A DNA stretch of 64,000 nt, taken from positions 2,323,978 through 2,387,977 of the forward strand of contig JBBPEB010000014.1 of assembly GCA_039096225.1 (NCBI GenBank). The letters are read 5' to 3'. The notes beneath the pieces were generated by a model that made no database searches, was not told where the DNA came from, and was given only the letters and a program-made list of their open reading frames with translations. Positions 24,180-62,396 of the stretch are shown here, piece after piece. Position 1 is the stretch's first letter. Every line of letters starts with the position of its first letter. The translations under genes were made by a program, and so were the position numbers. The DNA is from Blastocystis sp. Blastoise (lineage: Eukaryota; Protista; Bigyra: Opalinata).

Positions 24180-24774
24180 AATGGGATAATACATTATGAT
24201 TTCTTTTTGTTTTATTTTTTAATATATATTTTTTTTCTTTTCTTTCTTTAGAAAGGTTTTTTCAATATATATTATCTTTTTTTAATGAATCAAATACATA
24301 AAATAGTTGTGTTAATTGCTTCTTAAATATGATTATAATAATAAAAGATAATCAATATAATTAATACATAATTTTTTCAATCATAACAAATAGATAAAAA
24401 TTTCCAAACATTTTGTGGCACTTGTTGTGATTGTCATAAAAAAACTACTGTATATTAATTTATATAGAAAATGTAAAAATTTTTCATCATCAAAAAGTTA
24501 CGAAAGTGTCACATTTTGTATGATAATTGTACCGCCGAAAATAATATTATTTTGAAAGACACTGTATTAAAAAACATTTTTATTAAAAAATATTTTAAAA
24601 TAATATTTAAATAATATGAATAATTATTTGAAAAAGTAACTAAACAATTTTCTCAATGTTTAATATGACTATTATAAAACAAAACCAATAAAATATTATT
24701 ATTATATTAATCATGAATAATTATTAAAAAATAATAATATATATATATATGAAATTATATATAAAGAAAAAAGA

Positions 24775-27700: not shown

Positions 27701-30700
27701 TAAGGTTGAAAAGAATAGAAATCATAAGAGAATGTTTTTCTGTGTAAATTAAAAAATTGTTGGTGTTGAAAGTCTAATAATATCCAAGTAGCACCATTAT
27801 CATTAGAACCTTCAATTCTCCAACTAGAAGGAGATCTCCGATTACAATATTCACCATTAGTAACCTTATAATGATTGATAAATTCTTTACGACCATTATT
27901 GAAAGTATATTGATAAATAGCACCAACGCATCGTGGACCACTAACAACTGAAGTATCTATTTTATTATCAAATAACATATCAGTACCTTCATCGCCAGTC
28001 TTTTCAATATCAGACCAAGCAACACCATCAGATACTCTGTATTCACCAGAAGCAATAAAAGAAACAACACTTGTGAAATTATTGGTAGTAGAAAGAGTAT
28101 CTTTCTTATGAATCTCAATAGCTATAACATTAGTACCAACAACAAGAATAGGATTAATAAGTGTAGAAACAGAACTAATAAATACAGTACTAGAAGTATA
28201 TTCAGCAGTAGCAGTAGTATTATAATTAACAAAACCAGTAGGCATATTAATTCTTCTGATTTCATTACCATTAAGATAAACAATCATACCAGCATAAGTA
28301 CTAGCACTAATATCAATTCCAGCAAAATCAGGATTAATAGTAGAAAGAGTGAAAGTAGTTCTATAATATTGAGTATTACCAGTAGGAACAGGTAAAGATC
28401 CAGAAATACCAGAAGTCCAAGCAACATCAGAGAAAGAATCAAGATTCCAACCAGAAGGAACCTCACTATCAGAATCCAAGTATTTCCAAGTATTAGAACT
28501 AGAAATAATTCTACCGATGCTTAGAATAACTGTCTTAGGAGATACACGTTTAGTAACAGTACCAGAAACGAGAGGAGTTGTATCATCTTCAATATAAACA
28601 GAATAAGCACTAGCACCAAAATTGTCATTCTTTATATCAGACATAACTAAAGAATAAACACCAGTAACTTTACAATAGACGAAATCTTGTGTAGAATAAT
28701 CAACACTAGTAGATCTTGAATCAACAACTACACCAGTAGAGTCTTTAAGAATCCAAGAAACTTTATTAGCATTAGTTTTATAATCGAAAGATAATTTGAA
28801 TAGGTTATTAGGGAAATTACAAGTAAGTACAGAGATAGTAATTGTAGCAGTTACAGGAGTACCTTGAATACTCTTAGCAGTAATAGTATATACAATAGGA
28901 GATTGGAGTTGAGTAGGAATACCGTTTAAGTAGCCATTGGAAGAATCCATAGTAATACCAGTAGGAGGAAGAGGAGTAATACTAAAATCATAATAATATT
29001 CAGAAGAAACTAAAAGATCAGGAATTATAGCATCCTTATAAGCAACAAGATTAGAAGGAGTGAAACTAAAATCAGGAATAACAAGAGAATTAATATCTTC
29101 AATTAAAAATTCCCATTCAGAGAAAGCATATTTATTATTCTCTTCAATAACAACAGCTTTAGTAACAGCAATCTTATAATTAGTATAAGCTTTAGTAGAA
29201 CCAAGAGCATAGAAACATTTTTTTTGTTGTCTTTCTTTCCAAGAATTATTAGTTTGAGAAGTAATAGAAGTCCAAGTAATACCATCCATAGAACCATAAA
29301 TAGTCCAATCTGCAGGATCATGACTAGGAGCATCTCTGTTGGAATAAATACAATATTTATTCATATAAATAGCTCTCTTATTATTAAATTGAACGGAAAC
29401 CCATTTTTCACTTACAGAATCATGAATAGGAGTAATCCAACGAGTATAAGGATTAGAATCAAAAAGATTAGCAGGATCACCATCTGTAAACACACCACTA
29501 GAAGCATAATAGCCATCAGAAGCATTTTGAATGACATTAGAATCGCCAAGAAGATGGAATATACCATCGAAATCAAGTTTATAAGAACCAGTACCAGAAT
29601 TAACAAGAGCAATAGCTATAGTAACACTATTGTCATTAGAAAGAGTAGTCATAGGACCCGATACTGATCTCCATAAGAAAGAAGAATCACCATCAGTAGC
29701 AACAGTAGTTGTAGTAATTTCACCAGCAGCAATATTATATCTATAGACTTCATTACCATTTACATAAATAACACAGCCAGCTTTAGATTTAAAGAATAAT
29801 TCCCAACCAACCATATTCGTCTTAGAAATAATAGTAAAAGTACTTCTAAGAAGAATAATACTTTGAGTAACAGAAACAAGAGGATTATAGTAAAGTTGAG
29901 ACCAAGATACATCAGAGAAAAGAGCAGTCTTCCAATTAGCATCAGTAGGAGCACCTTGTTGATATCTCCAAGCAGATTGAGGAGCAAGATCAAGACGAGT
30001 ATTAACATAATAAGTAGTAGTAGTACCAGTTAATAAATACAAGCGAGCAATTCTATGTTCAGTAGTAAGATCATATTTTATAGAAACATCAAGATAAGCA
30101 CCTTTTTCCCAGCCATCATTATTATCATCGAAAAGAACAAATTTCCAACGACCAGCAGGTTGACATTCATTTAATAATTGATTAGCACCATTATTAACAC
30201 CAGTAACAGTAATAATTTGAGTATTATCTTCAGTATAAATAACAACACGTTCATCTTTAGAAGTCGATTTATTCACTTTAGTAATAACTACTTGAGCCAT
30301 AGAAGGTTGTTGACAAACAATAACACTAATAGTCATAGTAAAAGAAGTAGCAGCATTAGTAGCACCATCAATAGCACTAATGGTATAAGTTTTAGTGGGT
30401 GAAGTTGTAGTTACAGAACCATATATAATACCATTATTAGAATTAAAATTTAATTCAGTAGGTAAAGCAGGAGTAATAGTATATGTATGAATACCACTCG
30501 AAATAGGAGCAATAGATATAGATGGATCATTAGTATGAATATTAAGAGTATGAGAAGGATATTGAAGACCAGGAGTAACAAGAGGTTGATTTGTAACAAA
30601 AGTACGAATTTCAGATAATTGAGTAATACTTTCACCATTATTAGATAATATATCCAATTTAATTCTATTATAAGATTTTCTATTAGAAGGAATATTAAAT

Positions 30701-32351
30701 ATATAATTAGTACTTCTAGCAGCAAATTTGTTATTAATAACATGGTCTAAGAATATCCAGGTAATACCATCATCTTCAGAACCATAAAATTTCCATTCTT
30801 TTGGATCTCGTCCAATATAATCATTACCAGAAGTAATTTGATAAGCATTAAACCAAGTTTTAGATCCATTAGGAAGAGCAATAATAATAGTACTTGAAGT
30901 ACCTTTAAATAAGTATTTAGTAGAATCAGAATTATCAGCAACATTACCACAAATTTCACTTGTATTATGGTTTTCAGCAGAACAAGTAGCAGTACCACCA
31001 GAAGTAACAACTTCACCAGCTAAAATAAGGAAATTAGAAACTTATTATGATGTTTTTTAAATATATTAAAATATTCGTTTAATAAAAATAGATTTATATA
31101 AAAAAGGTAATACACTACTAATAATATACTATTAGAAGAAATAGGAATAGCGAAAACATCAAATACATCAGCAGTATTTAATTGAGAAGAGTGAGAGTGA
31201 ATTTCAACAGCAACTGTAAAAGCAGTACCTGATGTGACATAATGAGAGGGAGGAATAAAAATTCTGTTTTTATAAATGATTATAAATATGAATTATTTCT
31301 AATAATATAGAAAAATATATACATTTTCCAGGTAGGTTCTGTTTCAGAAGTTAATGAAGTTGTATTAGAATTCGATACACTATAAATAATATATAATAAT
31401 AAATCATTATTATCTTATATATTTATTGATACAGATAAAAAATAATAATATAAATATGTTGTATTTAAATAAGCAAAAATATATATACATAGGTAAGCCA
31501 ACACGAGACGCTTCAATACCATTTATATAAACGACAAAACCAGAATTGGTTTTAATACCAAAATGAATTGCATAAGTATTCATATCAACGATAGTAGTAG
31601 TAAATCTATAATAACGAGTAATAGTAGAAATAGGATGGAAAGAACCAGGAGCAAGAGAAGTCCAAGTAGAATCATCAAATGATATTTGTGTCCAAGAAGT
31701 ATCAGCTTGAGCAGTAGTTGAAGTCTTCCAAGTAGCAATAGGACTAACAACCATTTTTACTATATAGAATAGCATACGATAGTAATTGTTTAGAAATGAA
31801 TAAAAATGTATTATTATTATATATAAATAATTCTTATATTTGTAATAATAATGTATACAAGTGAATTGTTGTAATTTAGTGACACCTGAAGAAATTTCAC
31901 CATTACTGAGTGTCGTGTTAAAGAAGGTAATGCCGTTATAATTAATTTGAAGATAAGAACCAGCAGACCAACCATCACCGTAACTAAAATTAATATATAA
32001 TTATCATTAATTTGTTTTTTATTATATAAAAACAAAACACAATATTATTTTTTAAACTTCAAAAATACTAATGATTGCATACCTATCGTACATAGAAAGA
32101 GTGTAGACAGTATTCAATTGAAGACAAACATCGTATTCTTTGGAAGAAATATAATTAGTCTCAGTAACTTTTCCTTCATACAAATAAGTACCAGTTGTAT
32201 CAGTACCTTGAAATATTTTCCAGGATTCTTCATAACGAAATAGGCCAAACTTTCTTTTAAGAATAAAACACTGGTAGGCATTTTCACGGATATCAAAAAA
32301 ACGACAAATGAGAAAAAGTAAACAAAAAATTTTAAGACACTTTTCAGTCAT
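24775..32351 (-). CDS. Large type-I membrane surface/adhesin-like protein (galactose-binding-like/F5-8 type C domains, putative-Ig He_PIG repeats alternating with Cys/Trp HRM-like modules, C-terminal TM and basic tail)
   Basis: Five short 5' exons (EESWKIF...DSYGDGW...WKTS...YYRFT...VAVEIH) join in frame to one exon at 31019-24775. Repeats of PSLPDGLxFNxxxGxIYGxPT and CxxxDxWPxTExGxxxxLPC..R.C...W. Hydrophobic IILIVVIVILVILLILIFVL followed by KNIKKEKK. The start codon is tentative. Confidence 0.85.
25500..27180 (-). repeat. Four tandem 420-bp (140-aa) coding repeats
   Basis: The anchor ccatcaggaagagaagga recurs at 25631, 26051, 26471 and 26891, an exact 420-nt period. Confidence 0.95.
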
Positions 32352-32569
32352 AGCGAAAAGAGTAGCCAAAAAATAGGTTATTTTTGTCGGATATGGTCTT
32401 TCTTTTCATTCGTTCAGAATTCTTTTAGAAACGTCATTTTTTATTTATTTATCGTTGTGTGAATGATAATAAAAATATATATAACAAAAGACAATAGATA
32501 ATAATAAAAAAATAATAACAATAATAAAGATAATAAAATAATAATTATTTATAATATTTTTGAGTAATT

Positions 32570-33110
32570 TGATATCATTTTGGATCACTATATATACATA
32601 AATGATAGAAATGATAATAATATAGATAACATATAAATATATACCTTTATGTATCACTTGTAGAATACCCCTTGAAGAAAAACCACAACTATAAAAATAT
32701 AATTTATAAAAATAAATATATTATAATAATATACCTTCAACCACCAAACAGACTAGACCAAGAGAAACCTCATGAAGGACCTAGAACCTATATAAAAATA
32801 AAAGTAGTTAATTTTAAAAAAATAAAATATAATAAAATACCTTCAAAACCAGGGAGTTGTTAACCAAGGAGACCGACAACAACACCTGAACCTATAGAAG
32901 ATGATAATAATAATAACAAAGAGAATGCTAAAAATATATACCTTTAATAGCACAAGATTTCTAGTTACATAGACCCCACAACTCATTGTTTAACTTTAAA
33001 GAAGAAGACCAATTAGGACCTATTTGAATCTATTTGGATAGATCATGAAGACTATAAAGTTTAAAGCAAATAAAAAATATTATATACATCTTATAATATA
33101 TAAAAAATAT
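32570..33110 (-). other. Apparently spliced multi-exon segment without a continuous ORF (long 5' UTR, lncRNA or decayed gene)
   Basis: GC-richer blocks bounded by AAG|GTAT donors and TATAG acceptors. Blocks at ~32735-32787 and ~32942-33051 have stops in all three frames. Confidence 0.45.
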
Positions 33111-33895
33111 CTGAAAAATAAATAAAAATAAAAATAAATATGTGAAAATATTAAATCTTAAAAATAAAGAGAAATTCCCCCTTATAAAATCTTTTTTTCT
33201 ATAATAAAAGTTTGTGTAAATTCGTTGTTTCCAGGGGTTAAAACATTTTAAAATTTTCCCTTTTTCTCTATATAAAAGTCTATTTGAATTTTTAATTGAT
33301 ATATAAATGTTATATGTGTCTATTAAGCTTAATTATTTAATTATAACAGATTTCCGGACTTAATTAAACAAGAAAATTGTTATTTTAATAAACTATAATT
33401 ACAATTAAATATATTTGTTAGTTATTTTTATATAATACTATTCTATTTATAATAAGAATGCAATAGAGAATCAAAATATATATTTAGTATAGCTATTGAT
33501 GAAGATATAATTCGCAATTGACAACTTTTGTTTTATAGTATGTTTTAGTTCAATGCATCATATATTATTATTAGTGAATAAATAAACTGAGAATGTCTGA
33601 GAGGTTTGTAAGTTGTTTTAGGCATTATAAAGAAATCATAAAATATAAATAGAAACTGTATTTATGTTAAACTCCTTTTTATGTTATTCCAAAAGAATTC
33701 TTTTAAAATATTTTTATTCTCAAATACTACAAAACAAAATGTATATAAAAAATAAATATAACACAATAAAAAATAGATAAAATAGATATTAGATAATATA
33801 TATAAATATAAGTAACATATCATTATAATACATATAATATGTATATGTAAGGAACTTCTTTCTATCCTATATATATATATGACTATAAAACTATG

Positions 33896-33934
<39 letters not shown>

Positions 33935-36327
33935 ATAAAGAGTAGATTAGTTGCGGCTGTGGGTATACCTGTTCTTTAAGGAGTATGAGAGAGTAATATA
34001 TAGGGAGAAAGGAAAGGAGGATACTAGGGATATAACGAGAAGAGTTAAGGAATAGAAAGGAAGGGAGAGACACTATGAAGGGATAGAATAAGATAAATAA
34101 TATAATACAAACTAATAAGTATAATAACTATTATATACAGGATACATAATAACCATGCTTCTGATAATCATGGTTATCAAGGAGAGAAATAAAACGCTGG
34201 TATTATAGGAGGTATATAGTAAGTATATATATATTGATGTATTTGTGGTTTATAAATATATAATGTCATATCTATCATATGTATAGCATTTTGATATCTA
34301 TATATACATTAATTATAAATATAAAATAGTTAATACTATGTATAATATTTTATATCAAAAGTTTTATAGTGTATAATTAAATATACAATTGAGAAATACT
34401 GGAGAAGTAATATTCCCCGCGATTAATGATTCATAAAGAAAACACCCACAATAATACTGGAAGATGAAGAAGGAGAAATATGGAGAACTGTACATAACCA
34501 CGGGGATAATAAGTATATCCTATAAAATATTTAATAAGAAGATCATGTGATGTAAGTAGCTGACAGAGGGATTCACACATCCATAGAATACATAGATTCT
34601 ATATAATAATAATAGTAATATATAATAATATATAGATTCTATATAAAATAATAATAATAAATATAATAATAATAATAATAAATATCTATATATATATATA
34701 GCATACATAAGGGAAGTACATGACTATAGAGCTATATATTCCTTTATATTTATAAATTATTCCTAATGCTTGTTATGTATATTTATGTTTATGTATATAT
34801 ATATTAAGGAATGAATAAGAAGGAAGAATAAGAGGGATACGAGGTAATAAATAAGGATGAGAAGGAGTTAAGAGCGTATAATTTAAATCTTTATTTTTTA
34901 ACTGGACAAATACATATCAATTTATATATATATATATAATTCTGCACAATAACTACATTCAGATGCTAATATAATTATTTATATTTGTGATATAGGGTAT
35001 CATAAACTATATATTTATAAATATAAATAATAATTATAATTATAATAAATATAATAATAATAGATATAATAATAATAATAAATATAATAATACTAATAAA
35101 TATAATAGTAATAAATATAATAGTAATAAATATAATAAATATAAATATAATAATAATAAATATAATAAACATAACAATATATACCTTTTTTATTAGGTTC
35201 AAAATTAAATCCAAAATTTCTACTGGCAACTCTCATTCTCCCTCCAGATCGAAAAGCGGGAAGTGGGGTAATGCTGACGAAGATACACTCAGTTTATTAT
35301 TATTAGTATTATTAATATTATTATTATTATTCTTTCCTAAAGTAATAATATTATTATGATGAGAAATAGCTATTCTATCTATATTTGTAGGAGTGAATAA
35401 TATATTACTAGCACAATTATTATGTATATCATATGTATAATCAATACAAGTATTAAGATCTGAAGATTGTAACTTTAAGTTGATTTGATTGGTTATCGTT
35501 GAAGATAAATGTGCGGATAACGTTCTGTTAACATTCTGAGGAATAATATTTTTTATCATTATTATCATTAGTATTATTACTAGTATTATTATTATCATTT
35601 TCAAATAATTCACCATTACTAATACTATTGATTCTCTTTAGAGGAATAGGAGAAGTACTTTTCAACAAAGGTGATATTTCTATATCATTATCTGCTTCTT
35701 TATATATAGTATCCATACTTAAGGGACAGACTTCAGAGAATGAAGATGAATTTCCTTGTGTAGTAGTAGTATATATTTCATTTCGATCACCATCAAATAC
35801 TATTTCATTAGTATTATTTACTTCATAAGGAGAAATTGATGTAGATGAAGGCATAAGAGTAATAGAAGCTTTTGGAAAAGGTATTTCAGAATCATATTCT
35901 AAGGGCTCTAAAGAATTTCTATTCGAACCAGAAGGATTATGAGAGAAAGAATGTATATTATTATTAGTAGTAGTATCAACATATAATTCATTATTATTTA
36001 TTATAATACTATTTGATGTAGAAGAAGGAGAAGCCGAATTCGATATAGAACTATCTACAATAGGAGACGAGACACAATCATTATTTTCATGATAACTACT
36101 ATTTGAGTTTTGTTTCATCAGATGGTGTTGACTATTATATTGTAAATTTGAGAGAGAAAGAGGAATAGAAGAAGGTGGAGTTGCTGATAAAGATGGAGGT
36201 ATATATATAGATGTACCTATATGAGTAGAAGGAGTAGATATACGTATTGATGAAGGATAAGAATGGCCTAATAATTTATTAGCTATTATATTATTATTAT
36301 TATTATTTATAGAAGATATAAAAGGCA

Positions 36328-36328
<1 letters not shown>

Positions 36329-36424
<96 letters not shown>
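36329..36424 (-). repeat. (AAT)n microsatellite encoding a poly-Asn run
   Basis: About 32 consecutive AAT codons in ORF 35528-36802. Confidence 0.95.
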
Positions 36425-36425
<1 letters not shown>

Positions 36426-36825
36426 GCATTAGTATTAATACTATTCATACTAATACCATTAATATTAATTTTCTTTTCTAAGAATAGTTTATGTATTACT
36501 TCTGGTTTATAGAAAGGAGTTAATATATAGAAAGCATCAAGTAATGTAGAGGTAAATAATTGCTGTATAATATAAAGATTTGAAAAAGATGGAGTTAATA
36601 AAGAAAAATAAATTTCTATTATCATTTGTATAGATGCAGAATCTATATAATAATAATAATAATTAGATATTATATATATTAAAAAGAATGAAATTATATA
36701 TATACCATTATGACATATATTGTCTAATATATATATATATATATATATCTCTTTTCCACCTTTGTAACATCTTAATATATATTTCATCCGATATATGGTC
36801 ATCCACCAAATTATCTAAATCCTTA

Positions 36826-36827
<2 letters not shown>

Positions 36828-36895
<68 letters not shown>

Positions 36896-37010
36896 TAAGT
36901 ATAATAATAATATATAAGTAAAATAATAAGTATAATAATATGTAATAATAAGTATAATAATATGTATAATAATATGTATAATAATATGTATAATAATATA
37001 TATATATATA
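36828..37010. repeat. Intronic (TA)n run followed by ATAATAATATGT-type minisatellite
   Basis: Directly visible in the sequence. Confidence 0.85.
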
Positions 37011-37134
37011 TATATATAATAAATATATATACTTCTTTTAATATCTAAAGATAATGTTGTTAAATAACCAGTTAATTTATCTTGATCATCTATATATATA
37101 TATATATTATATATATAATTATATATATAGTATT

Positions 37135-37166
<32 letters not shown>

Positions 37167-37551
37167 TATATATATTAATATATATATATATATACAATTT
37201 AGTTAAAGCAGCAAGATAAAGTAATAGAATATCTTTAAATAAATAAATATTATCATCATTTTCATATCTTAAACATTTATATATATAATCACATATTTTT
37301 GTATCCATATAATTAGTGATATGTATAATATCATATATAAAGTTGATAATAGAACGATATTGCTTTGTTATTGTAGTATCTTCAGAATTATTTCGATATA
37401 TATATATATATCATATAAATGTGTTCCTTGTAGTAGCATATATATATTATGGAAACATCCTATATATTATTATTATTATTTTTAATATAATAATCTTTAT
37501 TAAATAATAATAAATTAAAATTGGAAACTAAAAATTAAAAAGAAAATCAAA

Positions 37552-37617
<66 letters not shown>

Positions 37618-38169
37618 GACATACCATTTTAATTTGAAAGAATATTACCAACAATCGGATTTGTAAATGGGAAAGAAAAATTCATATTCTATATATAATA
37701 TAATAAAATTAGCATAAAATAATATAAAATTAAGATAAATAAAAATTAAATAAATATTTTATATAGGAAAATAAAAAAAAAGAAAAATGTTAATGCAAAC
37801 GAAAAAAAATATATACGATATTTATATACTGTTGATAACATGTTTGGTTGTGGTTTGACATTGATTTGAGTAAGAACCCAAAAAGAACCTAAAAATAAAT
37901 AAAAAAGAAATGGAAAAAAATACCTTAATAGATAGAGCGAAGCATCAACCCGTTTTTGGTAAACACTTCTAATAATGACTGAGGAGACTGTTTGAATGCA
38001 GACTGGAAGCCAGAATGAAGGACCTAAAAGAATTATATAAAAAAATAGGAAATATTCAATAAATAAATTATGATATAATATATACCTGTATAGAAAACAC
38101 CTAAGATATGCATAGCAGTCACTAGATCTGCTTGTATGCAACAAATTAAAAATAAAGATAAATTCATAT

Positions 38170-39400
38170 TTAAAGTCAATTTTTTAGTCAAATACTAAAA
38201 ATTCTCATAAAAATTCATTTTTAAATTTGTTTTTTAATTTTTATGACTCAGTACTAAAGTAACAAGTTTTAACAATTATATATTACACTATTGACACAAC
38301 ATTATTGTATCCCACTACTTTCAGGTTTTAAAAAATTACTCATTTTTGTCGACTCTCTGATCTGTTGACTAACTCGTCTAAAAACTATTGATTATAACTT
38401 AAAACATTTTTATAATACATAATTAACTCTGAAAATCACTTTTTAAAAGATTTTTATTTGATTCTGAGGAAAAGTAGTTTTTTTAGAAGTTTTGACATAC
38501 TCTTTGTATGCGGAACTTTAAGTCATGATAGAATAAAATGAAAAAAGTCTTTTAAAACTCTTATGTCGTCTGATATATAATAAAATAAAAATAGACTCAG
38601 TTTTGAACAATAAAATTATTCCCGTAAATATTTTAAAAAATCAAAACTCTGGTCTGACTGCCCATGGAATAAATAGGCTCGGTTCAATTTTTCAGTGTAA
38701 AAAAAATATAATTTTTTGACTTTTTGGCTGAATTTTGGTTCTGAGCCATAGAGGTCAGCTGATTGACTTTTAATTACATTTATGACTCTGAGAGGGTCTT
38801 CACTTCAAACACAACTATAAAATATTTTAAAATATTGACCCCATTATTTGTCGGAATTGCGACTTTAAAATAAAGAAAAACGTTTTGGATATTGTGTGAC
38901 CCTCAATAAACAAAAAATAATGTCAATTCTTTATTAAAATATGTCTAATAGGGTTTTTAAAGTCTAATAGAACGTCGTCTTAAAAATTTTGTGAAAATTT
39001 TCATTTTTTTGCCTAAGTCTTTTTTTTATTCAAATTTTATTGGCTGAATAAGTTCTGAACGAAAATTAGCCAATCAAAAACCTTCAAAAACTCAAAAGTG
39101 CCTACCAGTGAAATGTAAATTAGGAACTGTACACTCTGATTTAACTAAGTTTATTATGAGTTAAGATCAATCATATAACAAAATATACCTAAAGATATCA
39201 ATCCTAAAATACAAAAAAGAGCAACAAACTGTTTCATTTCCTGTTAACAAAAAAAATACTTAAAAAAAGTAATTTTTGTTAGTTTTTAGGCTTGACATTA
39301 TTTAACTAAAAAAAATGGTCTTAGTTGTTTTGCTTTTTAATCGAATGATATCCACAATACGACTGGCTCAAATATGTCAATGACATAGAGTTTCACATAA
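38170..39400. promoter_or_regulatory. GAC/GTC-rich island upstream of the 33.9-38.1 kb gene
   Basis: Dozens of TGAC/GACT/AGTC/GTC motifs (for example ATGACTCA at ~38243), interspersed with A/T homopolymers. Lacks the (TA)n runs typical of introns. Confidence 0.35.
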
Positions 39401-40549
39401 AAAAACATATATGTTTCTTAGGTAAATTTTTAGTACTTTCTTTTAGTAATGTAAGTTTTTTTAAAAGAGATTTCTTCAATTCTATTAAATTAGTATAACA
39501 GACTATTAATCCATTAATATATGTGATTCAATATTTCTCTATTAAAAAGATAATTTGTTAAAACCATCAAAATGATGTTTATAATAACGAATGATCCTGA
39601 AGAATAACTATGACAGTTGGGTTTTTTGTAAAGTTTAATTCACTTAAAAAAGATATATATAGCATATTATATTTTGAACATTAAATTTCTTATGCAAAAA
39701 TGTTAAAAAGGATTCCATAAAAAGAAACTTTTTTAGTGAAAACTTTTTTTAGTTTTTCTTTATTCTTTTGTATAGAGTAAATATTAATATTTTTTACAAT
39801 ATGTTTAGTTAATGAAGGCCTCAAATGATAGAGTAGAGTTGATTGTAGTTGTTCTTGTTAAACATTTAAGTAGATAGGAAATGTTGACTTTCGGTTTATT
39901 AAAGGGTTGTAAATTGTATTTAAAATAATGTATAGAGATAAAATATAAAGAAAATAGTTTTATTATAATGATAATTATAAAAGAATATTAAAAAATAGAA
40001 CACAGATTGTTGTTAAAAATTGATTTACGGTAAAAGTTAACTGAATCAGAATAATTTTGTTGAATTTCTTGATTAAAACTTTTGTTTTTTAAACTTTCTC
40101 TTTTAATTATTATTTTTTGCTGTAATGATTTAATTAGATTTAATAGATTGAATTACATTAAAGCAAGATATCCCTCTTCAATGTCTAATGTTTATTTTAG
40201 ACTTTATTTGAGTTAATTGCATTGGTGTTTAGAAGTCAAATTTATTTGAGATTGGATCTTTTGTTATGTTCTGAAATTCTTCAGTATAACATTTCAAATG
40301 AGATATTAAATCAAAAAATACTTTTAGTATATATTAGTTTTCTTAATTAGTTATATTTATTTAATATGCGTTTATTTTATAGTATTTAAATGAATACAGA
40401 TCATTTGATGTATTTATTATGATTATTAATTGATATTAGTATTGATTCTTTATGAATTAGCTATAAATTTTTTTTATATTTTATAAATTTTTATTTCATT
40501 GATTTTATTATTAATCTTTTGTAATTTTATAATAATAATATTATATATA

Positions 40550-42000
40550 TGTAGATTTATGATTTAAAAACAAATAGAAAAATATAAAAGTATATATATT
40601 ATTATACTCATTAAATATATATATGTATTTCATGATAATATTTGATTCTATATAAAGAAAGATATAAGGTTTAATTCCGAATACGTGTTATATATGGAGT
40701 TAAAAGATAAAGTAGTGTCGGTTTTCTATATATTTATAACTAGTCATGTATTATTAAATGTAGAAATAGTAGAAATTACAAAATGTCTTTCTTAAATGTT
40801 TTTTTTAAATAAAGTATATATATATACTATTTATTAGTATTATTGATATAGAACTTTAATGAAAAAATTAAGCCCTGTTAAAAAATTTTAAATCTAAACT
40901 TTATAATAATAAGTATATATATTGGAAATATAATAAAAATATATATTATATATATTATATATACATATTATATTTATTGATAAATTTACAAAAATAATAA
41001 ATCTTATAGTATATATATGCAGGTTTGTTTCAAATCATTTGGGTTATAATATGTTGAAGATGGATATTGATTTATATGAAGAAGAAGAAGAATAAGAAGA
41101 AGATCGAAATAAGAGAATAGAAATTTGTATGAAAAGAAGAGTAATATGAGTAGATGAAAGATCATAGATGGAAATAAGAATGAAATGAGAATGGAACAGA
41201 GATAAGAATAAGAAATATATATGTAATAGAAGAAGAAGGAAAAAATGAGAATAACCAATTTTAAATGAGAAAGATAAGGAATGGGCAAGGATAAGAATAA
41301 AGATAATTTCATAGAAAAGGAAAGGAGATGAAGAAAGAGAAGTAAAAGTAGAAAGTGTATAGAAAGAACATGTAGATGAAGAAATAAAAGGAATGGAATG
41401 AAAATATATATAATTGGAAGGAGATGAGAAAGGAAGTAATGATATAAAAAGGAAATGAAAAAGAAGAAGAATAAAGTGATGAAAATGAAGAAGAGTAGGT
41501 AATGATAAGAGAAGAAGAACCAGTAATAATTAATAGAAAGGAAAGAAGAAAGAGAATGAAAAAACTGGAATATACTATAAAGGAACATGAAATAAAACAG
41601 AGTATTAAGAATAACTATAACTGTTTTATGTAACATAAGAATATAAAATAAGTAGAATTAGGAGAGAAGAGTGAATAGAAGAGTGAAAGTGAGAAAAAGA
41701 CAAATATAGGACAAGAGGAGAAAATAAGAATGAAGAAAAATATATATAAAAATTTTGGATATATATATATAAATAAAAATGAGAATAATTAAAAATAAAT
41801 TTGCTCAATAAATATATTGAATGACACTAATCACAAAGATAAATAAAAATGATTCTCAATAATAAAGAAAATACTACGACGTAAACAAAGTATAATAAGG
41901 TAATGTTATATATATATACCATATAAAAGAGAAACCAAGAATATAGTGATCCGAAAAGCAAGAATTAGACTCTATAGCATTACAATAAATTATATAAAGT
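40550..42000 (+). pseudogene. Decayed gene with an E/K/R-rich purine exon
   Basis: An acceptor at ~41021 is followed by SNHLGYNMLKMDIDLYEEEEE*EEDRNKRIE... with many stops. Flanking TA-rich GT-AG-like introns. Confidence 0.4.
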
Positions 42001-43442
42001 ATTATATAATAATGGTTATAAAAAATATATAGAAATAAAAATATATATATTTACAATCTGAATATAAATCAAGCCAATCTATATCAATAATGAATATTTG
42101 AACTTTTTAGATAGTTTATTTGGCAAAGAAATTTACTTTATTATATTATTTAAGACAAATCTATCGATACAATTAAGTTCTTTTTTCCTAAAAGATTTAA
42201 AAGTCATTCAGTTAGCATGATGAGTCAATTATGACTATCTTAGGAAGCCTAAAGAAATGGTTTTGTGTAGTGACGTCACATCATCCCATTTATAACAACA
42301 AAACAATAGCTGATCATCTAGTTCAACCAAACTGCATCACCTAGATAAGCTCATATTAGAAGATGGAGACAGACCAATGCAGATTAATTCAACAATGGAG
42401 ACTGCAAGACACTCTAATATACTTCTAGGGCCTATATAAAGATAAATATATGCTTAAAGCATACAAAAACGAGATTAATCATATTTTTATGGGATTATTG
42501 AAACTTCACAATAAATTAATTTATTAAATTCTATTGGGATCTTAATAATTCTTCTTTTTATTGATTATTATTTTATTTAAATACTTTAAGCTGTTTTTCT
42601 TTCTCTTGATGTCTTGTTGTTATTGTTGGAATATATATTTAAGTAAATAAGATTAGTTAATTGGTTAATTATTTATAGAGTATTGAATACAATAAAACTG
42701 ATAATTTCAGTCATAAGGAAATCGTTATACTTGATGAAATTAACAAGAATGAGTTGCATATACGATAGTCATTTGATTGAGTAAATTAGTGGAATTATGA
42801 GAAAAACTAGGTTTATGTGTGTTTAAATTTAAATTCTATATTGTTTTGAATAGGTCTTTTAGTAAACAAATCATTTATGATAGAGTTACAAGCAAAATTG
42901 ATTTTTCTTATTGATATGTTGAGTTAGAATATCGTTATTTTATTTTTCTATAAATAATTTGAATTTTCTTCTGACATATTTATCCAGATGCTAATTAGAA
43001 TAGTTTTCTAGGTAATATAAATCTGTTTAAGTTCTTCAAAAGTATTAAAAAGTAGTTTATAAATGTTAGAAATGATTATTAATGTCAATCATGTTAATAC
43101 TAACAATTAAAATCACTTCTAAGAGTATAAACAAAGAATGCATTGTTCGTTTATAGTCTTCAAGCTATTATTGATGAATATTTATATTTTATTTGTGTCT
43201 AGAATGGATCAATAAGATGATAAACAGAATGAATTAATGAAGAGAAGATTCTAAGTGAATGTAATTGTGAATGTGTTGTGTGTTAAGTAAACGTATCTAA
43301 AAACATTATATACAAATGACAAACGATTCATAGAGTTTATTTAATTACTTGAAACTCAACATAACGAATTAATTTGATACATATGAATGAAACTATCTAT
43401 AGAGAAAAAATATTTATAATTTTCCAAAAAACATAATAAATG

Positions 43443-43511
43443 ACCTTAGATCAGGAATTGAACCTGATAACAATCTATGAATGATTGTTACTGACCATAT
43501 TCAGTCTAAGG
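43443..43511 (-). ncRNA. Non-canonical tRNA-like RNA with UCA at the anticodon position
   Basis: CCTTAGA-CTGA ATATGG TCAG-TAACAATC ATTCATA GATTGTTA-TCAGG TTCAATT CCTGA-TCTAAGG-T. Perfect 7/4/8/5-bp stems, B-box GGTTCAATTCC, D-loop GG, and T6 12 nt downstream (43426-43431). Confidence 0.7.
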
Positions 43512-44149
43512 AATATTAATTATATGAATATAACTCTATGTACATTTAACAGAAAAGAAACTATAAAAAAAATTATATATATTGTATATAAACGATTACT
43601 AAAGAACCTATATAATGAAAGACTGTAGAATAAAAAGATTTAGTAGAATATATAAGGAATATAAGTATAATAAAGAATATAATAAAAAAAAGCGATTAAC
43701 ATAAAATCAATATTGTATAATATATACATATATATATATAGACAGGAAAAATGTAAGAGATATCTTCTATAATAGACAGTAAGAGAATGAAAAGAATAAA
43801 AAAAATATATATATGTCTGAATCGGCTATAATTAAGTTTAGAATATATATATTATTATAAGAGAAATAAAAAATATAAAGTAATATTTATATATAGAATA
43901 CTTAATCAACAATATAATAATAGTTTTTATAAATAGTCTAGATTTTATTGGTATAATTAATAATATATATAAAGAAAAAAAATCTTATTGTAAAATAATA
44001 ACTAGAGAATATATAACAAGGATTAAATATATATTAAAAAAGGTTGAATTCTATATACAAAAGAGTATTTGTTTTAGATCAATCCTATATATATATAAAT
44101 GTGTATGCAGAAATAATAGTATTAAAAAAGAAACCTATATATATATATA

Positions 44150-45950: not shown

Positions 45951-46561
45951 AAAAAACCCATTTTTTAAATTTGCTTATATCTCTATCCATATTGTGTATT
46001 CATACTTATTAAATATGTATATTTATATTTAATTATAATAGCAATACAAAACAACTTTAGAACAGAGAAAGAATTTCTTTTATTAACATTATTAACAAAA
46101 TACTATCGAATTTATTATTTATTGAATTTCAGTAATGTTTATTATAATAGATATATAAATAAAAAGATAGCACAGTCGAATTAGTGCTTATTGATGTATT
46201 GATTTTAGTGTAATTCCTCATTAAATCTGATATATTTTTTCTCAAAGAAGGATGATATATTCATATACGTTTTTAAAACAATAAATCTCTATTCAAATAA
46301 AAAAATAGAAGAAATATCTCTGAAAATGTCTGAATAATTATAATCATGAAAATTCTTTAATATCTTACTAACAAATACAATAAATTCACGAATTTATTAT
46401 ATAAAAAAAATACAATTTTTTTTCTTTGTTATCTCAATGATTTATTATATTTTTATTATATTATAGTCATTAAAAAGGTGTTTATACGTTATTTATATAG
46501 ATTATCGTATTTTGAGTATAATACTATATGATCATTTTCTGCTTATAGTTGTATTTGAGTG

Positions 46562-49500
46562 ATGTCAGACACTAAATCTTGGTTAAATGAAGAGAAATGT
46601 ATCTGAATATGAATATAAAAAAATTATCAGTTCTAGATTTGTTTACATTTCAAGATGAGACGCAATTATGGATTTCAAGAGAATTTATAGAGAAATATCC
46701 TGAATTACACTTTCATGATATTATACAGCACCCTTATAAATATGAAGATTGCAGTTATTAATAGATATACCTTCACTGAGCATGGATAAAGTGATTTCTT
46801 TTTTGATGGACGATAACAAGGATATTTATTCTTTAAATCTACGAGATAGTTATGATATATATAAAACAATTTTAGAATATCCTGATTTTACTGATATCAC
46901 AATACGAAATGATTTATTATTTCATATAAAAGAATTATTTCCTATATATTTAAAAGAAAATGATTATACACTATATAATTACATGCATCAGATGAAAAGT
47001 GTGGATAATTTAAAGTTCCCTAAGGAATTATTTAATTTAAATAAGAAAGAAATTGACATAGATGGTATTTATGTTATTCTTTACTAATAATGTATTATAC
47101 AAGGATTATTTACTCCTCAACGAAAAGATGAATTATTATATTATTCTCTTCTTTTTAAAATTATGAATATTACTAAAGTTGATATTAAATGTATATATTT
47201 AATATATTAGTTTATGATAATAACATATATAGATAATTATGCATCCGATATTCCATTAGAATATATATGTCCATCATGTATTCAAGATATATTCCCTTCT
47301 TTAGAAGAATTAAAAGTAATTAGTATATATATAATTTTATAATAATAAATATACCTATAGTAACAACACATTATAAGAAAACTAATCAATTATTGAATCC
47401 AAATAGTGATGAATATATAATGGAATATTCTCGCCTATACTATAGTGATGAAGATAAAATAAAGAATTCTGATGATTATGAATATTATACTGAATCAGAA
47501 ATGAATGAATATAATAACATGTCTTCTTTAGATACCAATAAACTAGATTATACATCTGTTTTGATTGATTCGTATAATGAAAGAAGAGAAGAGAATATGT
47601 TACCTAAATTATATAAATATGTTGTTGATGAAGCTATATATAAAAATGATTATTCAGAAGTAAAGAAATGCTACGTTAATAACACAGAAGATAGAATCAT
47701 AATTAAATATGATGGCATATATATATATATATTCTATCGCTTCCTTTATTTTATTATCATTTTATAGATAAGAAAAACAGCAAAACATTTGGGTATATAA
47801 TGATATTCTTCTATATTAAGAATGATTATTAAATTATTCTAATATATATATATATAATATAGAATTGACAAAGTATCTTCTAAATGGGGTATTTCTCAAT
47901 TATTACATCTCTTTTCATATTATTCAATTTCACAAATCGAGATTATTACATGTGTATTTATATATATATAATAAACTATTAATATAGATGATTATTCACA
48001 ATATAATGCATCAATAATGGCAAAAGCATTGGAAGAAGGTGTTCTTGATTCTTCAACTACATTAAGTGTTTTCTGCAGTATTCTTTTCTATTTATTATTA
48101 TCAATATTATTATTTAATATAGTTATATATCTTACTAACAAAATTGATGAGAATTTATTTAACAGAATAATGACAACTCATGTATTTCCAAATGTTACTG
48201 AACTCATCTATGATGATGATGATCGTATATATATAATAAATTAGTTATTCTATATATATAGTATTGTTCCAATTATCTTCAATAAAAAACGAATGTTTTC
48301 CCAAATTACATATTATTAATTACGATATACATATAGGTATATTAATGTACCTATAGTTTATCTATTGTTATATAATAGATGTTAATAATTTTGAGTCACT
48401 ATTTCCTAAGAATTTAATGTCTATGATTGATACTAGTCATATAGATAGAATTGATTCTGATCAAAAGAATGAAATAACCTGTCTTTTAAATAAACTAGTG
48501 TATACTCATTCAATTCATATTGATGGAATTGGTATATAGCGAATTTATTATATATATATATTTAAGAATGTAATACTATTTACATAAATAATTCTATTTA
48601 TTTTCTTCGTGTATAGATAATTTTGAGAATTGTTTTCCGAATTTAAAAGAATTATTAGAAAAAAATCTTATTTCCTTTAAAGAACTTTCTAGTATAAAAC
48701 ATTTCTTTATTTTTTCTAATATATTATATGTTTATTATATATATTTATATTCTATAAAGTTGATTTTACTGATTCTGAAAATATCTTAAAGCTAGATTAT
48801 TTTGAGAAATACAACCAAAATATTGATTGCATAGATATTACATTTGAAGGTATCTATTTATATTTAATAAATATATAATATATGACAATAATATATATTC
48901 ATTTGTAGAAGAAGAAGAAGAAGAAAATAATAATAATAATAATGAAGAACATAGTGATGATAAGCAACCTAGTAAAAATGATATAAGAAACTCTTTATCA
49001 AAATTCTTAAAGAGTAGTGTATTACAACATTTGAATAAGTTAACTGTTTCATGTATATTCATTCTTTATATTAAATTATTATCTATTTCGTATAATATCT
49101 ATAGTTGAAGAAGATAGTAGTATAAATTATTTAAAATGGGTATCAAGTCTCTTTGATAACAATATGTTTAATACTATTCATGAATTAACTCTTAATTGTA
49201 TATTATAGTATAAAAATTATATATATATATATATGTAGTATTTTCTATTGATGAAGACACATCCTCTAAATATTTAAATGAATATAAAAATATAATCAAG
49301 AAATTAATTCCTAAGGCTTCTAATGTTATAATACATTGTATATATATACATATATATTATGACAAATTAATAATTATTTAATTACATTATTATATTAAAG
49401 GTAATATGACTTTTATAAACCAATTAATTCAAAAAGAATATTTCCATAATACAAATAAATTAACTATAAGTATATATATATATATAATATTTTAATTATA

Positions 49501-50349
49501 GTATATAATATTATCTCATCCTAATTATAATACATTTCATTCTAGATACCAACGATATACCCAATGATTTTTTTTTCAAACTATATACTACGGATAATTT
49601 CCCTCAATTAAAATCTATACAGTTTTGTATATATATGTATATTAAGAATAATAATAATTATTTTAATAATATATATCAATAGGCTGCCATTTTTTTACAG
49701 ATTTTTCTTCTGTTTTTATTCAAGAATTATGTAAATATATACATAATAATAACTTTCTATCATCAACTACTATTCAATTATATGGTATGTAATCATATAT
49801 CATTATAGTAATATTCATTAATATTTTTATTGATATAGAAAACTTCTCTAATGATAAATATATTTATAATCCTGAAGTTTCAATTTTTAGACTTAAATAC
49901 GACACTAATATATTTATGGATACAATTATTGGTACAAATGGTATATATATAAATATATATAACATAGTATATATAAATATAGATAAAGTGATGAATAAAT
50001 ATGAGATAGAAACATTATTTGATTGTATAAATGGAATTCAAACTAAACATTTAAAATACATAAAAATATGTATATATTAGTCTTCAATCTATTGTATAAT
50101 ATTTCATTATAATAGATATATATGATGAAGAACAATTATCAAAACTTATCAATTTTATTACTTTAGGAAAGATTTCTCAATTGAAAGAAATTATTATTTA
50201 CATTAGTATATATATAATTATTTATATTTATATTCTATTATTTAGGTGATAAGATCTCTTCTGAACATATTGATATATATAAAAATAAACTGAATTATTC
50301 GTCATTTATTCAAGAAAATCATGTAAATTATGAATTCAACTTATTTTAA
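46562..50349 (+). pseudogene. Family A paralog 2 (BTB-like/LRR-like) with an early 1-nt deletion creating TAA
   Basis: TAT GAA GAT TGC AGT TAT TAA at ~46741-46761 versus GGT AGC TAT TAT ATA GAT in paralog 1. The rest of the exon chain is well preserved, so a consensus error is possible. Confidence 0.65.
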
Positions 50350-52129
50350 TTTTACTTTTTTTGCTGTTTTTTAATATTTATATTGTTCTAATTAATTCTC
50401 TATTTCTTTTCATATTTCTCAGAAAGTATTCATAACGTTTCTACTCATTATATTGTATATATTTTTGTTTCATTTTAAAGTTGTAATGATTAAATACATT
50501 TGAAATATAGAAGCAAATGATTAAAACGATTTAGGTTTGAATATGATTTTTATACTTATTAGGAATCTATTGTTATATTCTAAATACTCCTCTTTATTAG
50601 TATTATTTCTATCAATATAGATCTATTTCAATGATATATAAAGTATAAGTAGATATCATTTTTTTATTAAAGTAGACTGTATTATATTTTTCAAATGATA
50701 GAGAATACAGAAAAGATTTTTACTTTATTAGTCCTATTTTTATTAATATACTAAAAAAATAATAAGATTCTTTTTTAAATAATTTATAACTTGATTAAAA
50801 TAGTGTTATATAAGATGCTTGTTTAATTATTTAATAAGAATTTTCAAAAAATAATTATATGTAATATATAATACATTGCTTATTGAATTATATATTTATG
50901 CTATGATAAATAAGGTTTATAAATTATTGAATTATATGTATATAAACAGAAATATCAATGAATATATGTTTTATTTAATAATTATATGCGTTGACAACAA
51001 CTATTTATGAATCAAATGAAGTTTTATATGGGTAGTGATTTTATCTTAAATACATCATAATTTATTAAATAACTTTAAATATATGTAGATTATTAGTTGA
51101 AAACTGTAAAATAAATATAATCGATATTATTCTTATTAATTGATATATTACATTTATTAACATATCAAAAATATTGAAAACTATATATACATTTATATTA
51201 GCATTAATATCTTTTTGAATTTGCTATCAAAAATAGTTGTTACTCATCATATTTATAGATAATATATTATGAATAATAATAATAAATTACATGGGATATC
51301 ATGATAAATTATTGTATAAAAATTAGAGGACAATATGGTGTGAAATAGAAGTGGTACTAATAATAATAAATAGTAGAGAGAAATGATGGAAAGAGGAGAT
51401 ATAACTGCGTCAGAAGACAATAGAAAATATTTTTGATTAATCTATATATATATGTTGCAAATATATTTTATTAAATAAAAGAAACTTGTTAATTATAATT
51501 AGAAAAAGAGAACGATTATAAGAAAAACATAACAATAACATTTTAGAATAGTCATAATTATCAAAGCCAAGTATATATATTATACATAAATATAAGTAAA
51601 ACATATTTTCAGATAAAATAAGAGGATTACAGAAGAAATTGCAAATCAAACAAGTTATCAAAAATGAATAAGAATACTGTAATATTATACTAGTGTTGCA
51701 TATGTTTTATCAGTATTCAATTCATTGTTTAAATACTAAATGATGTGAAGATTTAGTAATGAACAGTCCATTCTAACAAATTTATAGCATTCTTATATGA
51801 AATATAATAATTCACAATTATTTGAAATACTTCTTATACTTATAAATGCAAAATAAGTGACTAATAAGGAAAGAAAATTAATTGAAAAATAAACACGGGA
51901 AATTATTTTCCAAAAAAAAATTAAACGAGACAACAAATACTTTGGGAGTGACTGAAAGAAATCCACGACAAAAAACCTACCCTACAAAATTAATATTGTT
52001 CGCCTTGAAGAGGGAGAAACACATTTAAAAGTAGATACTTGTATTTCAAAAGAGTTTCTTTAAAAGAGACTAAGCTTTTGAATTAGGGATACTGCTTTGT
52101 TCTTCAAATATTCATATTTCATAAATCAA

Positions 52130-53620
52130 ATGGTGAAAGAGAGTGTAGAATTTGATACTGATAAGATAGGTGATATTCAGAAGGATGTAATTCATTTTGA
52201 AAGACTGATTGGTGATTTGATTGGTATTTTAAGTAAGTCAATAAGTTTCTGTATTCATTCAAGTGAATCTATAAATGAATTAGTAAAGCAATCCGTAAGA
52301 AATTGTGAAGGAATGAATGATAAGAATGGTGATGATCCAAGTATAATTATCCAAGAATCTTCATATATTCATGAATGTGATACTACTATGAATAATAATG
52401 ATAATGGAATTGATTATATTCGGTTTACAAGTAATGGTCCAGTTTATTCTCTTCCTAAAAGAATAACAAATAGTTTAGTAGGTAGTTTCATTTATGAAGC
52501 TTCTCAAGAAGATCAGAGAAGTATTGATGGTACTATATTTTTTGATTATCATGGTGATGAAACACTTTTTCCTTTATTAATTGATTCTTTAATGAATAAG
52601 AAAGTGAATATTGATAAATTGGAATTAGGTGATCAACTTGATTTATTAAGAATGTTTGATTATTGTAATTTACCTATGCCTGAAGAATTTGTAAAATATC
52701 CATATAGATTTAGAAATAATCATGTAGTGAAACAATATAAAGAAAGTGATGATATTATTCTATATATAAATGATAATAAAGATGATACATTAAGAGATTA
52801 TTGGAAGAATAATGGATTATGGAATAAGATTGCTAGTGAATATGATGATGGATATGTAGATTATGATGAGAAGAATAATGAAATGTTTATGAAGATAAAT
52901 TTTGAATATATTGATTATATTTATGAATATATAAAGACTTATCATATTTACATTTCTGAAGAAGAAACAAAGACTATAAATAAAGAATTATTAGAGAATG
53001 AAATGTATAATTTATTTGGTGATAAAGGAAAAGAAAAGGTAAAAGAAGGAATGGAACAAGGATGGTTTAAAGGAAGTAATATTATTTTTAATAAAGTATT
53101 AGACACTTCATTAGTGAATTGGCTTGGTAAAGAAAAGAAATGGAAATTATTATTTAGAGCAAGTGAACATGATTATTCTGCAAGTGAATTTCATAGATAT
53201 TGTGATAATAAAGGAGAAACAGTAACTATAATTGAACATATTGGCCATAATGATCATATTAATATATTTGGAGGATATACAAATCAAAGTTGGGCTGATT
53301 CAGGCTATAAATTCTATTCTAAAGGATTTCTCTTTACATTAACTAATGAACATGGTATTCCTCCTACTAAATATGATTATATAAATAGTGATAGAAGTAA
53401 AGCTATATATTGTTATTCTTCTTATGGTCCCATATTTGGAGGTGGTTATGACATCAAGATATCTGATCAATGTTATAGTAATACTGATTCTTATTGTAAT
53501 GCGCATTCTTATTCTGAAGTAAGTACTCCTCAAAAACATTCATTATTTGTGAATACTAATAATGCTAATTCTAATAATAGTTTTACAGTAGAAGATTATG
53601 AAGTCTGGGGAAGAGCATAA
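52130..53620 (+). CDS. Family B paralog 2: BTB-like plus TLDc protein, no coding intron
   Basis: Uninterrupted ORF with all TLDc motifs, ending VEDYEVWGRA*. Confidence 0.92.
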   Translation: MVKESVEFDTDKIGDIQKDVIHFERLIGDLIGILSKSISFCIHSSESINELVKQSVRNCEGMNDKNGDDPSIIIQESSYIHECDTTMNNNDNGIDYIRFTSNGPVYSLPKRITNSLVGSFIYEASQEDQRSIDGTIFFDYHGDETLFPLLIDSLMNKKVNIDKLELGDQLDLLRMFDYCNLPMPEEFVKYPYRFRNNHVVKQYKESDDIILYINDNKDDTLRDYWKNNGLWNKIASEYDDGYVDYDEKNNEMFMKINFEYIDYIYEYIKTYHIYISEEETKTINKELLENEMYNLFGDKGKEKVKEGMEQGWFKGSNIIFNKVLDTSLVNWLGKEKKWKLLFRASEHDYSASEFHRYCDNKGETVTIIEHIGHNDHINIFGGYTNQSWADSGYKFYSKGFLFTLTNEHGIPPTKYDYINSDRSKAIYCYSSYGPIFGGGYDIKISDQCYSNTDSYCNAHSYSEVSTPQKHSLFVNTNNANSNNSFTVEDYEVWGRA

Positions 53621-53992
53621 AATAGGATAATAAATTATTAATTTTTTATTTCTATCTTTATATATATTTTTTCTTTTTTTTTATTGAAAAAACTTTTTTC
53701 AATATATATATATTATTTTTCATAAATTAAATATATAAAAGTAGTTTTGTTAATTGTCTTATAACTGTAATTCAATTATTAAAAGTTTATTAATAGTAAT
53801 CAATATATAATTTTTTAGGAATAAAAAAATATCCTTTTATTAGAAATACTTTATATAAATATATCTATTTTATGGATATATTAAAAATAAGATATAAATT
53901 CTAAGAATAAATCAATAAAACATATGTAGGATAAGAATTACAAGAAAGAAATATCAATACATTCTAATCTATTTAAGTATGTTATATATATA

Positions 53993-58174: not shown

Positions 58175-59251
58175 TCCTAACAATAAAAGGAATAAAAGAA
58201 AAATGAAAGCCTTTTTGAATTAAAATTATGAAACTTTATTCTTTTATAGCCAAAAATTTGATAATAATCGCAAACAATTATAAAAGAACATATCTTTCAT
58301 AAATTCACGATTATGTTTGATTTAATGACTTGAATTTAAAAACTAATCATGATTTTTATTTAATTAACATTCATTCTTTTCATTTCCTTATTATTCAATG
58401 AATTTGAATTTATAGTAAGAATTACTTTATTTTATTACTTATAAATTGTTATGATTTACAAGAATAGCATTAAAATAAATCAAAATAAACACTTATTATC
58501 ATTCTTCATTCCATTAGTTGTGGTAATAAGTCTATTCTATATTGATTACTAATCACGATACTATGAGTGTTATTGATTCATATAGATGACTTCTGAATTC
58601 CTTTCTTTTATTTACATTTTGGTTTTTCATCTTCTTTATAAAATCTGTTTGATCATCAATTTATATTCAGTATTACTCAAATAATTTTAATTCACATGAA
58701 TCACTTATCTAGGTTATGATAATGATGCTTTTTGATAATTATTCCAATTGATTCCTATATTTGTGTTTTTATATATTTAATATATATAAATTATGTTTAT
58801 AATGAATTTCTCTATTCATTAAATATGACTTTATTTCCTGCAATGTTAATGTCCTTCACATTATTCGAAAATTCATTATCTTCTCTTTTCTTTTTTTAAA
58901 AGTAATGAATCATGATATATGGTATACTGTTAGAATTATTATATGAATAAGTATATTATCTCTTTCAAAACAGTTACTATAATCTATTTTTTAGTGTACC
59001 ATTCAAAAGTACATAATAAACAAAATAAAACCATGAATTCATAACAAATAATAATAAGACATTATATTAAAAATAAAAAAATATTAAAAAAACTAACATA
59101 TATAATTAATAATGGCTACTATTCCATTATTGTCAAATCAAATAATACATTTAGATATATATAATTAATTGAAATTTAAATTGATATTTTTTAAAAATAA
59201 TAAAATAAATATATACTACAAATAGCAACATAAAAAAACATATAAAAAAAT

Positions 59252-62200: not shown

Positions 62201-62365
62201 ATTATTATTAATAATAGTCATTATATGATATATATATATATATATATATATATACCATATATTATTAATTCTTCTAATGAAGGGAATATATCTTGAATAC
62301 ATGATGGACATATATATTCTAATGGAATATTTGATGCATAATCATCTATATTATTATTATTTATA

Positions 62366-62396
<31 letters not shown>

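Follow-up and report, generated by a model that had tools for sequence, protein, structure and literature searches.

Human mascRNA and menRNA are tRNA-like RNAs without the eight linker residues, in which a 7-bp acceptor and a 17-nt T stem-loop are combined with a longer anticodon-equivalent stem, and two G residues of the D loop dock on the T loop to give an L shape (PMC11693755). The only lncRNAs described as matured by the tRNA-processing machinery are MALAT1 and NEAT1 (PMC12941219). Two other tRNA types offer a comparison for an unusual cloverleaf. Eukaryotic tRNA-Sec has a 9/4 fold with a 13-bp stack of acceptor and T stems, a long variable arm, a 6-bp D stem, the discriminator G73 and a length of 90-101 nt (PMC5330540). 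The tRNA-Pyl has a 3-nt variable loop, the pair G1:C72, G73, U33/A37 and the triplet CUA, and is typically without GG and T-psi-C (PMC7609411).

We have analyzed a stretch of 64,000 nt from the genome of Blastocystis sp. Blastoise (contig JBBPEB010000014.1), called here the window, which has a GC content of about 21%. The genome comprises 33.3 Mb in 34 contigs; the published account of the Russian-tortoise strain Rus-B gives 33.3 Mb in 33 contigs with a large low-complexity fraction, and mentions neither tRNA nor Helitrons (PMC12129017). On the minus strand of the window, read from 43511 to 43444, lies a linker-less tRNA-like four-way junction of mascRNA-type build, delineated by its fold, by a structural scan and by covariation. 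It is 68 nt long, its helices have 7, 4, 8 and 5 bp, all 24 pairs are Watson-Crick, and there are zero unpaired bases at the junction and zero connector or variable-loop bases. The acceptor-like stem of 7 bp, defined by covariation, starts with C1 (5′ strand at 43505-43511, partner at 43444-43450). In the alignment of copies it is followed on the same strand by a D-like arm (43491-43504) of 4 bp with the 6-nt loop AUAUGG ending in GG (43495-43496), and by the middle or "anticodon" arm (43468-43490) of 8 bp with the 7-nt loop AU-UCA-UA, of which the UCA (43478-43480) is not conserved. The T arm (43451-43467), placed by the same alignment and by genome matches, has 5 bp and the loop UUCAAUU, and matches the B-box consensus. 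The minus-strand discriminator position (43443) is U and CCA is not encoded. Further downstream on this strand is a T6 run (43426-43431), which could be a Pol III terminator or part of the pyrimidine tract of an intron, and the 5′ side is formed by an AT-rich flank (43512-43539, minus strand), conserved in the subfamily alignment and without an A-rich tract.

A preliminary description, made from the letters of the window, had reported a linker-less cloverleaf of 24 Watson-Crick pairs with these loops, and refolding, scanning and shuffling all bear it out. A generic scan for perfect linker-less cloverleaves gave 43444-43511 as the sole match in the 64-kb window, and the same scan gave no match in six locally shuffled windows. 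The folding energy is -22.4 kcal/mol (z = -4.1). The register of the junction slips by one pair, so that RNAfold and RNAalifold give 6/5/7/6 or similar, the tRNA-like register being 7/4/8/5; leader-trailer pairing around the cloverleaf receives no support from RNAalifold. The downstream T6 and the B-box match of the T arm were also correctly described, the A box being poor: in the window copy it agrees at five of seven fixed positions and is misplaced, and across copies it agrees at 4-5 of 7 and is shifted (expected at +8 to +19). When the recommended tRNA searches were run, the cloverleaf was not called a tRNA: ARAGORN found 0 tRNA genes in the window, by default and with -ps80, and Rfam gave no tRNA-family match for the window copy up to E = 10.

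The cloverleaf belongs to a family of small tRNA look-alikes that has roughly 130-210 members. BLAST on the genome gave 209 candidates, 40 of which were scored as cloverleaf copies. A 21-mer spanning the T arm and the acceptor occurs at 130 places in the genome with at most two mismatches and the 17-nt T arm has 213 exact matches, compared with 0 for the reversed control, the numbers 130 and 213 counting matches to a pattern and not folds. The full reading covers 31 distinct copies, a set that leaves out a large divergent subfamily (about 100 of the two-mismatch matches). Young subfamilies with identical copies are present. On contigs C1, C3, C5, C6, C10 and C11 many of the exact T-arm matches come as same-strand pairs spaced by 4.2-4.3 kb, which suggests an element with two cloverleaves. 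The triplet in the middle loop is UAA in 21 of the 31 copies and UCA in four, and the remaining six have other loops. The discriminator is U in 31/31, the GG of the D loop is retained in 30/31 (lost in copy L004), and the T arm is invariant across the copies read, which were partly chosen on it. The first run of five or more T residues (T5-T8) begins 13-14 nt past the acceptor stem in all 31 copies, which belong to three flank lineages; the local background of such runs is 0.02-0.24 per 25 nt. Searching metagenomes with the full pattern gave 0 matches. The T arm had 54 matches in metagenome and viral contigs, the best reaching 31.6 bits as against 134 for the window copy, and as candidate relatives they were rejected as ordinary tRNAs or chance. 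In the literature, of which our coverage was incomplete, we found no published account of an element of this kind, either for Blastocystis or for transposons.

The search for further copies and for covariation had been proposed beforehand, and besides the multicopy family it yielded six pairs with two-sided changes. Over 12 distinct versions 97.6% of the cells are paired, a value reached in 0 of 500 shuffles and compared with 23-43% in slid controls; these statistics are inflated by the kinship of the copies, and two divergent lineages supply most of the two-sided changes. One such change lies in the acceptor stem, one in the D-like arm and four among the eight pairs of the middle stem. Those in the acceptor (G-C to A-U) and in the D-like arm (G-C to U-A) were both found in copy L076, and acceptor G-U changes were found in four sequences. 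Between subfamilies the cloverleaf is 94-97% identical (2-4 of 68 nt differ) versus 76-78% for the downstream flanks (P from 1e-4 to 8e-6). Conservation extends into the 5′ flank for 19-28 nt and reaches 90-100% identity in the near subfamilies over its last 19 nt. The features retained are the pairing, the T arm and the D-loop GG; the middle loop varies. Covariation and conservation above the flanks establish that the fold is held by selection. Perfect pairing amid decayed DNA had been taken as a sign of selection; the selection stands, but the DNA in question is a dispersed non-coding repeat and not decayed genes. The same two lines of evidence support the suggestion, made at the same time, of a non-translational tRNA mimic. 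It had also been allowed that the structure might turn out to be a high-copy SINE or MITE fragment: the copy number is indeed high, but the copies keep the fold, so a high copy number does not make the cloverleaf debris.

The cloverleaf is internal to a dispersed non-coding repeat of more than 4.6 kb. By composition and boundary matches, its minus-strand segment 43540-45938 is a U-rich, GC-poor low-complexity tract, which has short exon-like blocks at its far end and ends at the cloverleaf. The alignment of the downstream segment (42500-43400) shows non-coding DNA with few indels, about 78% identical between subfamilies and without codon periodicity. It adjoins a minus-strand region of spliced transcript (41574-42500; GT-AG introns at 41970-42054 and 41575-41919), defined by one contig, and the composition of 41004-41700 marks a second pyrimidine-rich (U/C) tract of the repeat on this strand. 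Position 45938 is a sharp boundary: 20 other copies match the window exactly up to there, and the same 20 match it over more than 2 kb downstream of the cloverleaf. The distance from cloverleaf to boundary is 3.3-3.6 kb in those copies versus 2.4 kb in the window, and the boundary may be the true end of the element or the truncation point of the lineage of the window. In the window copy no TIR/TSD pair, Helitron 3′ end or hairpin, terminal repeats, transposase or coding remnant was found. The repeat unit is probably transposon cargo. Upstream of the cloverleaf its strand is U-rich, with 15-18% GC and a T-A skew of +0.16 to +0.23 in 8/8 copies tested; downstream the skew is -0.08 to +0.02 and the GC content 23-26%, again in 8/8 copies, divergent ones included.

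Two copies of the repeat contain nested insertions starting with CACTA, namely L008 (at about +256 from the cloverleaf, about 6.7 kb) and L060 (at about +381, about 4.4 kb; sizes by coordinates), hence the repeat is older than these insertions. The window itself contains, at 32269-39110, a 6.8-kb element bounded by perfect 12-bp terminal inverted repeats of the CACTG type, with an AAA target duplication and a cargo of gene pieces. The 1.1 kb at its right end match at least 39 other places in the genome, and the element adjoins the cloverleaf region and does not contain the cloverleaf. A separate repeat at 39826-40628 has a sharp left edge and nine copies of 72-74%, most of them within tens of kb of contig ends. 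Elsewhere in the window a block of two genes, an unknown gene and a TLDc gene, is present in three copies, one of them inverted (17602-24377, 46523-53816 and 56690-63044), and stops and frameshifts interrupt the copy at 46583. Database matches to the TLDc family number 275, the best 120 of which are all from Blastocystis sp. Blastoise. The minus-strand open frame of 1960 codons at 24775-30657 has He_PIG Ig-like repeats and F5/8-type domains and, judged by these, likely encodes a surface protein.

One public run, of low depth and with an RNA status that is a guess, contains a minus-strand contig which begins about 940 nt downstream of the cloverleaf and skips the two GT-AG introns. If the guess is right, the family of repeats yields spliced transcripts from the strand that carries the cloverleaf. 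The contig has 14 of 16 variants in common with L004, a sister copy and its closest one. No contig in this run, with its low depth and guessed RNA status, covers the cloverleaf or the upstream junction, and such data are not expected to show the cloverleaf. Splice acceptors upstream showed a seemingly significant strand asymmetry of 25 versus 6, which we discard since its control failed (77 versus 87 over a minus-strand gene region). Within the spliced contig, a palindromic TGACGTCA (CRE/bZIP-type) site at 42271-42278 is conserved together with its flanking bases in subfamilies that are otherwise about 77% identical. On the minus strand at about 43395-43444, the last acceptor G together with the discriminator U reads GT, with a conserved CTATAG some 48 nt further on in 8/8 near-family copies aligned; GT...CTATAG could be an intron over the T run that competes with RNase Z cleavage.

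The triplet UCA had led to the proposal of an undescribed minimal Sec or suppressor tRNA, a reading that does not hold up. The four UCA copies form one derived branch among UAA copies, with support of 93/97 in a flank-only tree of 24 loci from which near-identical copies and L008 were excluded. Their flanks are 93-96% identical and long stretches of the surrounding DNA are common to them, as if a single segment had been duplicated. Among them only the window copy is a perfect fold: each of the other three has a destabilising change, which is a C-A mismatch in two of them and a lost D-loop G in the third. Of the features of tRNA-Sec, the cloverleaf has the UCA in the window copy and similar letters in the T loop. 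It departs from tRNA-Sec in its 7/5 fold (a 12-bp stack) and lack of a variable arm, confirming the earlier remark that the long variable arm and the 9/4 fold are absent, and also in its 4-bp D stem, U discriminator, length of 68 nt and UCA that is not conserved across the family. Features of a decoding tRNA are likewise absent, namely U8/A9, position 26, a variable loop, a 5-bp anticodon stem, a purine at 37 (here U37, with an 8-bp middle stem and no linkers) and a conserved anticodon. The recommended search for the Sec machinery was positive, the genome having a SepSecS gene on C13 and two canonical tRNA-Sec genes (C5:69863-69948 and C14:272975-273060; 86 nt and 72.3 bits each). The cloverleaf was not among the matches when the genome was searched with RF01852 (tRNA-Sec), and the Rfam tRNA model did not match it either. 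A hidden ORF or recoded gene adjoining the cloverleaf was also sought: there is no codon periodicity, the synonymous fraction is 0.13-0.27 over the six frames, and the DNA next to the cloverleaf contains stops of all three kinds. With no coding signal near the cloverleaf in any frame, there is nothing there for a suppressor to serve. Hence, even though UCA occupies the centre of a 7-nt loop and is preceded by U, and even with Sec machinery encoded in the genome, a minimal selenocysteine or UGA-suppressor tRNA is very improbable. We infer that the window copy acquired UCA through a neutral A-to-C change, its middle loop not being used for decoding; finding UCA in a loop of this kind does not testify to stop-codon recoding. 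The further possibility of an organellar insertion was not borne out either, as no similarity was found to the nuclear tRNA loci compared or to the six organellar-type tRNA-cluster loci on C9 and C12 that the organellar comparison covered. The organellar-type tRNA clusters of C9 recur on C12 in the opposite orientation, and the two contigs are probably an organellar genome present twice or a nuclear copy.

The explanation we favor, putting it barely short of an even chance, is that the cloverleaf mimics a tRNA in the manner of mascRNA/menRNA, without decoding, and serves as a processing signal for RNase P and RNase Z. The RNA would fold into an L shape through the elbow of GG and T loop, host RNase P would cut before nucleotide C1 and RNase Z after the U discriminator. 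These cuts would end the upstream U-rich transcript without polyadenylation and release an RNA of about 69 nt, which may receive CCA. In favor of such a signal are the fold itself and its multicopy spread, the selected pairing, the conserved GG and T loop with a free middle loop, the switch of composition at the cloverleaf in 8/8 copies and its position at the 3′ end of the U-rich tract, the build common to mascRNA, the transcription and splicing of the repeat on the same strand, and the poor A box. Against it count the lack of RNA over the cloverleaf or the upstream junction in the one low-depth run of guessed RNA status, the lack of an A-rich tract beside the cut site for a MALAT1-type triple helix, and the spliced contig lying downstream and not upstream of the cloverleaf. 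A stand-alone Pol III gene would explain the T run at its fixed distance and the conservation of the 5′ flank just as well; in such a gene the T arm would act as B box, transcription would start about 14 nt upstream and stop in the T run, and trimming would be as in a pre-tRNA. The product would be a decoy or regulator, as are Plasmodium RUF6 or viral Pol III RNAs. Such a gene accounts well for a T5-T8 run held 13-14 nt past the acceptor in 31/31 copies of three flank lineages, for a 5′ flank conserved over 19-28 nt, and for a B-box match accompanied by no triple-helix tract. It accounts poorly for an A box of 4-5/7 that is misplaced and for the constant place at the end of a long U-rich tract, needless for a free-standing gene, and RNase P, too, depends on a conserved T loop for recognition, as in mascRNA (PMC11693755). 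We regard a Pol III gene as a close rival, if the less likely of the two; the processing signal and the Pol III gene taken together make a functional non-decoding RNA quite probable.

Two readings dispense with such an RNA. The cloverleaf could act as DNA, through a TFIIIC-binding B box (an insulator) or a fold of single-stranded DNA that serves transposition, which would agree with the lack of RNA on it in the one low-depth run (RNA status guessed) and with its fixed place 3.3-3.6 kb from the common repeat boundary in 20 copies. We consider this unlikely: a B box does not need stems, changes of the G-U type are tolerated, and the D-loop GG has been retained along with the T loop, the hallmark of an RNA elbow. 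It is also quite unlikely that the cloverleaf heads a tRNA-derived SINE or that it is neutral debris of a tRNA, multiplied by duplication. The high copy number, the young identical subfamilies and the destabilising change in 3/4 UCA copies would be as expected. A SINE, however, would start at its head, and the cloverleaf is inside a unit of more than 4.6 kb with common sequence over 2.4-3.6 kb upstream and more than 2 kb downstream; moreover, it is far more conserved than its flanks and resembles none of the nuclear and organellar tRNA loci compared.

On the processing-signal explanation, a wider scenario can be put forward, tentatively and at somewhat less than even weight: mobile repeats of a stramenopile would have arrived independently at the solution known from mascRNA, a linker-less mimic of the tRNA elbow, and carried it to more than 200 sites, with host RNase P and RNase Z cutting their long non-coding U-rich transcripts and releasing an abundant small tRNA-like RNA. 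If true, maturation of nuclear lncRNAs by the tRNA machinery would occur outside vertebrates and would be transposon-borne, and its convergent appearance in a gut protist, at high copy number, would show the linker-less fold to be a general solution. From the many natural variants one could map the requirements of the CCA-adding enzyme and of RNase P and RNase Z. Such a finding would further hint at an RNA function, so far undescribed, residing in the expanded non-genic DNA of tortoise Blastocystis.

Repeat RNAs made from tRNA-derived SINEs or by Pol III, e.g. Plasmodium RUF6, are multicopy, carry a B-box-like motif and a T run, and are found near expanded gene families. The cloverleaf resembles them in all these points and differs in being internal to a long unit, in a fold kept by compensatory change and in its weak A box. 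Like tRNA-Pyl, especially that of M. alvus, in which no base separates acceptor and D stem (PMC7609411), it has a compact core and an elongated anticodon stem; opposite to tRNA-Pyl, it keeps GG and UUC and leaves the triplet free. In contrast to mascRNA and menRNA, with their 57-58 nt and two vertebrate loci, the cloverleaf has 68 nt and hundreds of copies in stramenopile repeats, a T run fixed downstream and no upstream A-rich triple-helix tract (the longest A run is 2-3 in the 30 nt before it). Searched against Rfam, the window copy had no mascRNA match up to E = 10, nor had four other copies up to E = 1, so the cloverleaf is probably independent of mascRNA in origin. What it has in common with mascRNA and menRNA is the linker-less four-way junction, the 7-bp acceptor, the 17-nt T stem-loop, the two G residues in a short D loop, the longer middle stem with its non-decoding loop, a U before the CCA site with no encoded CCA, and a place at the end of a long non-coding stretch, and by this analogy the Blastocystis cloverleaf would work as mascRNA does.
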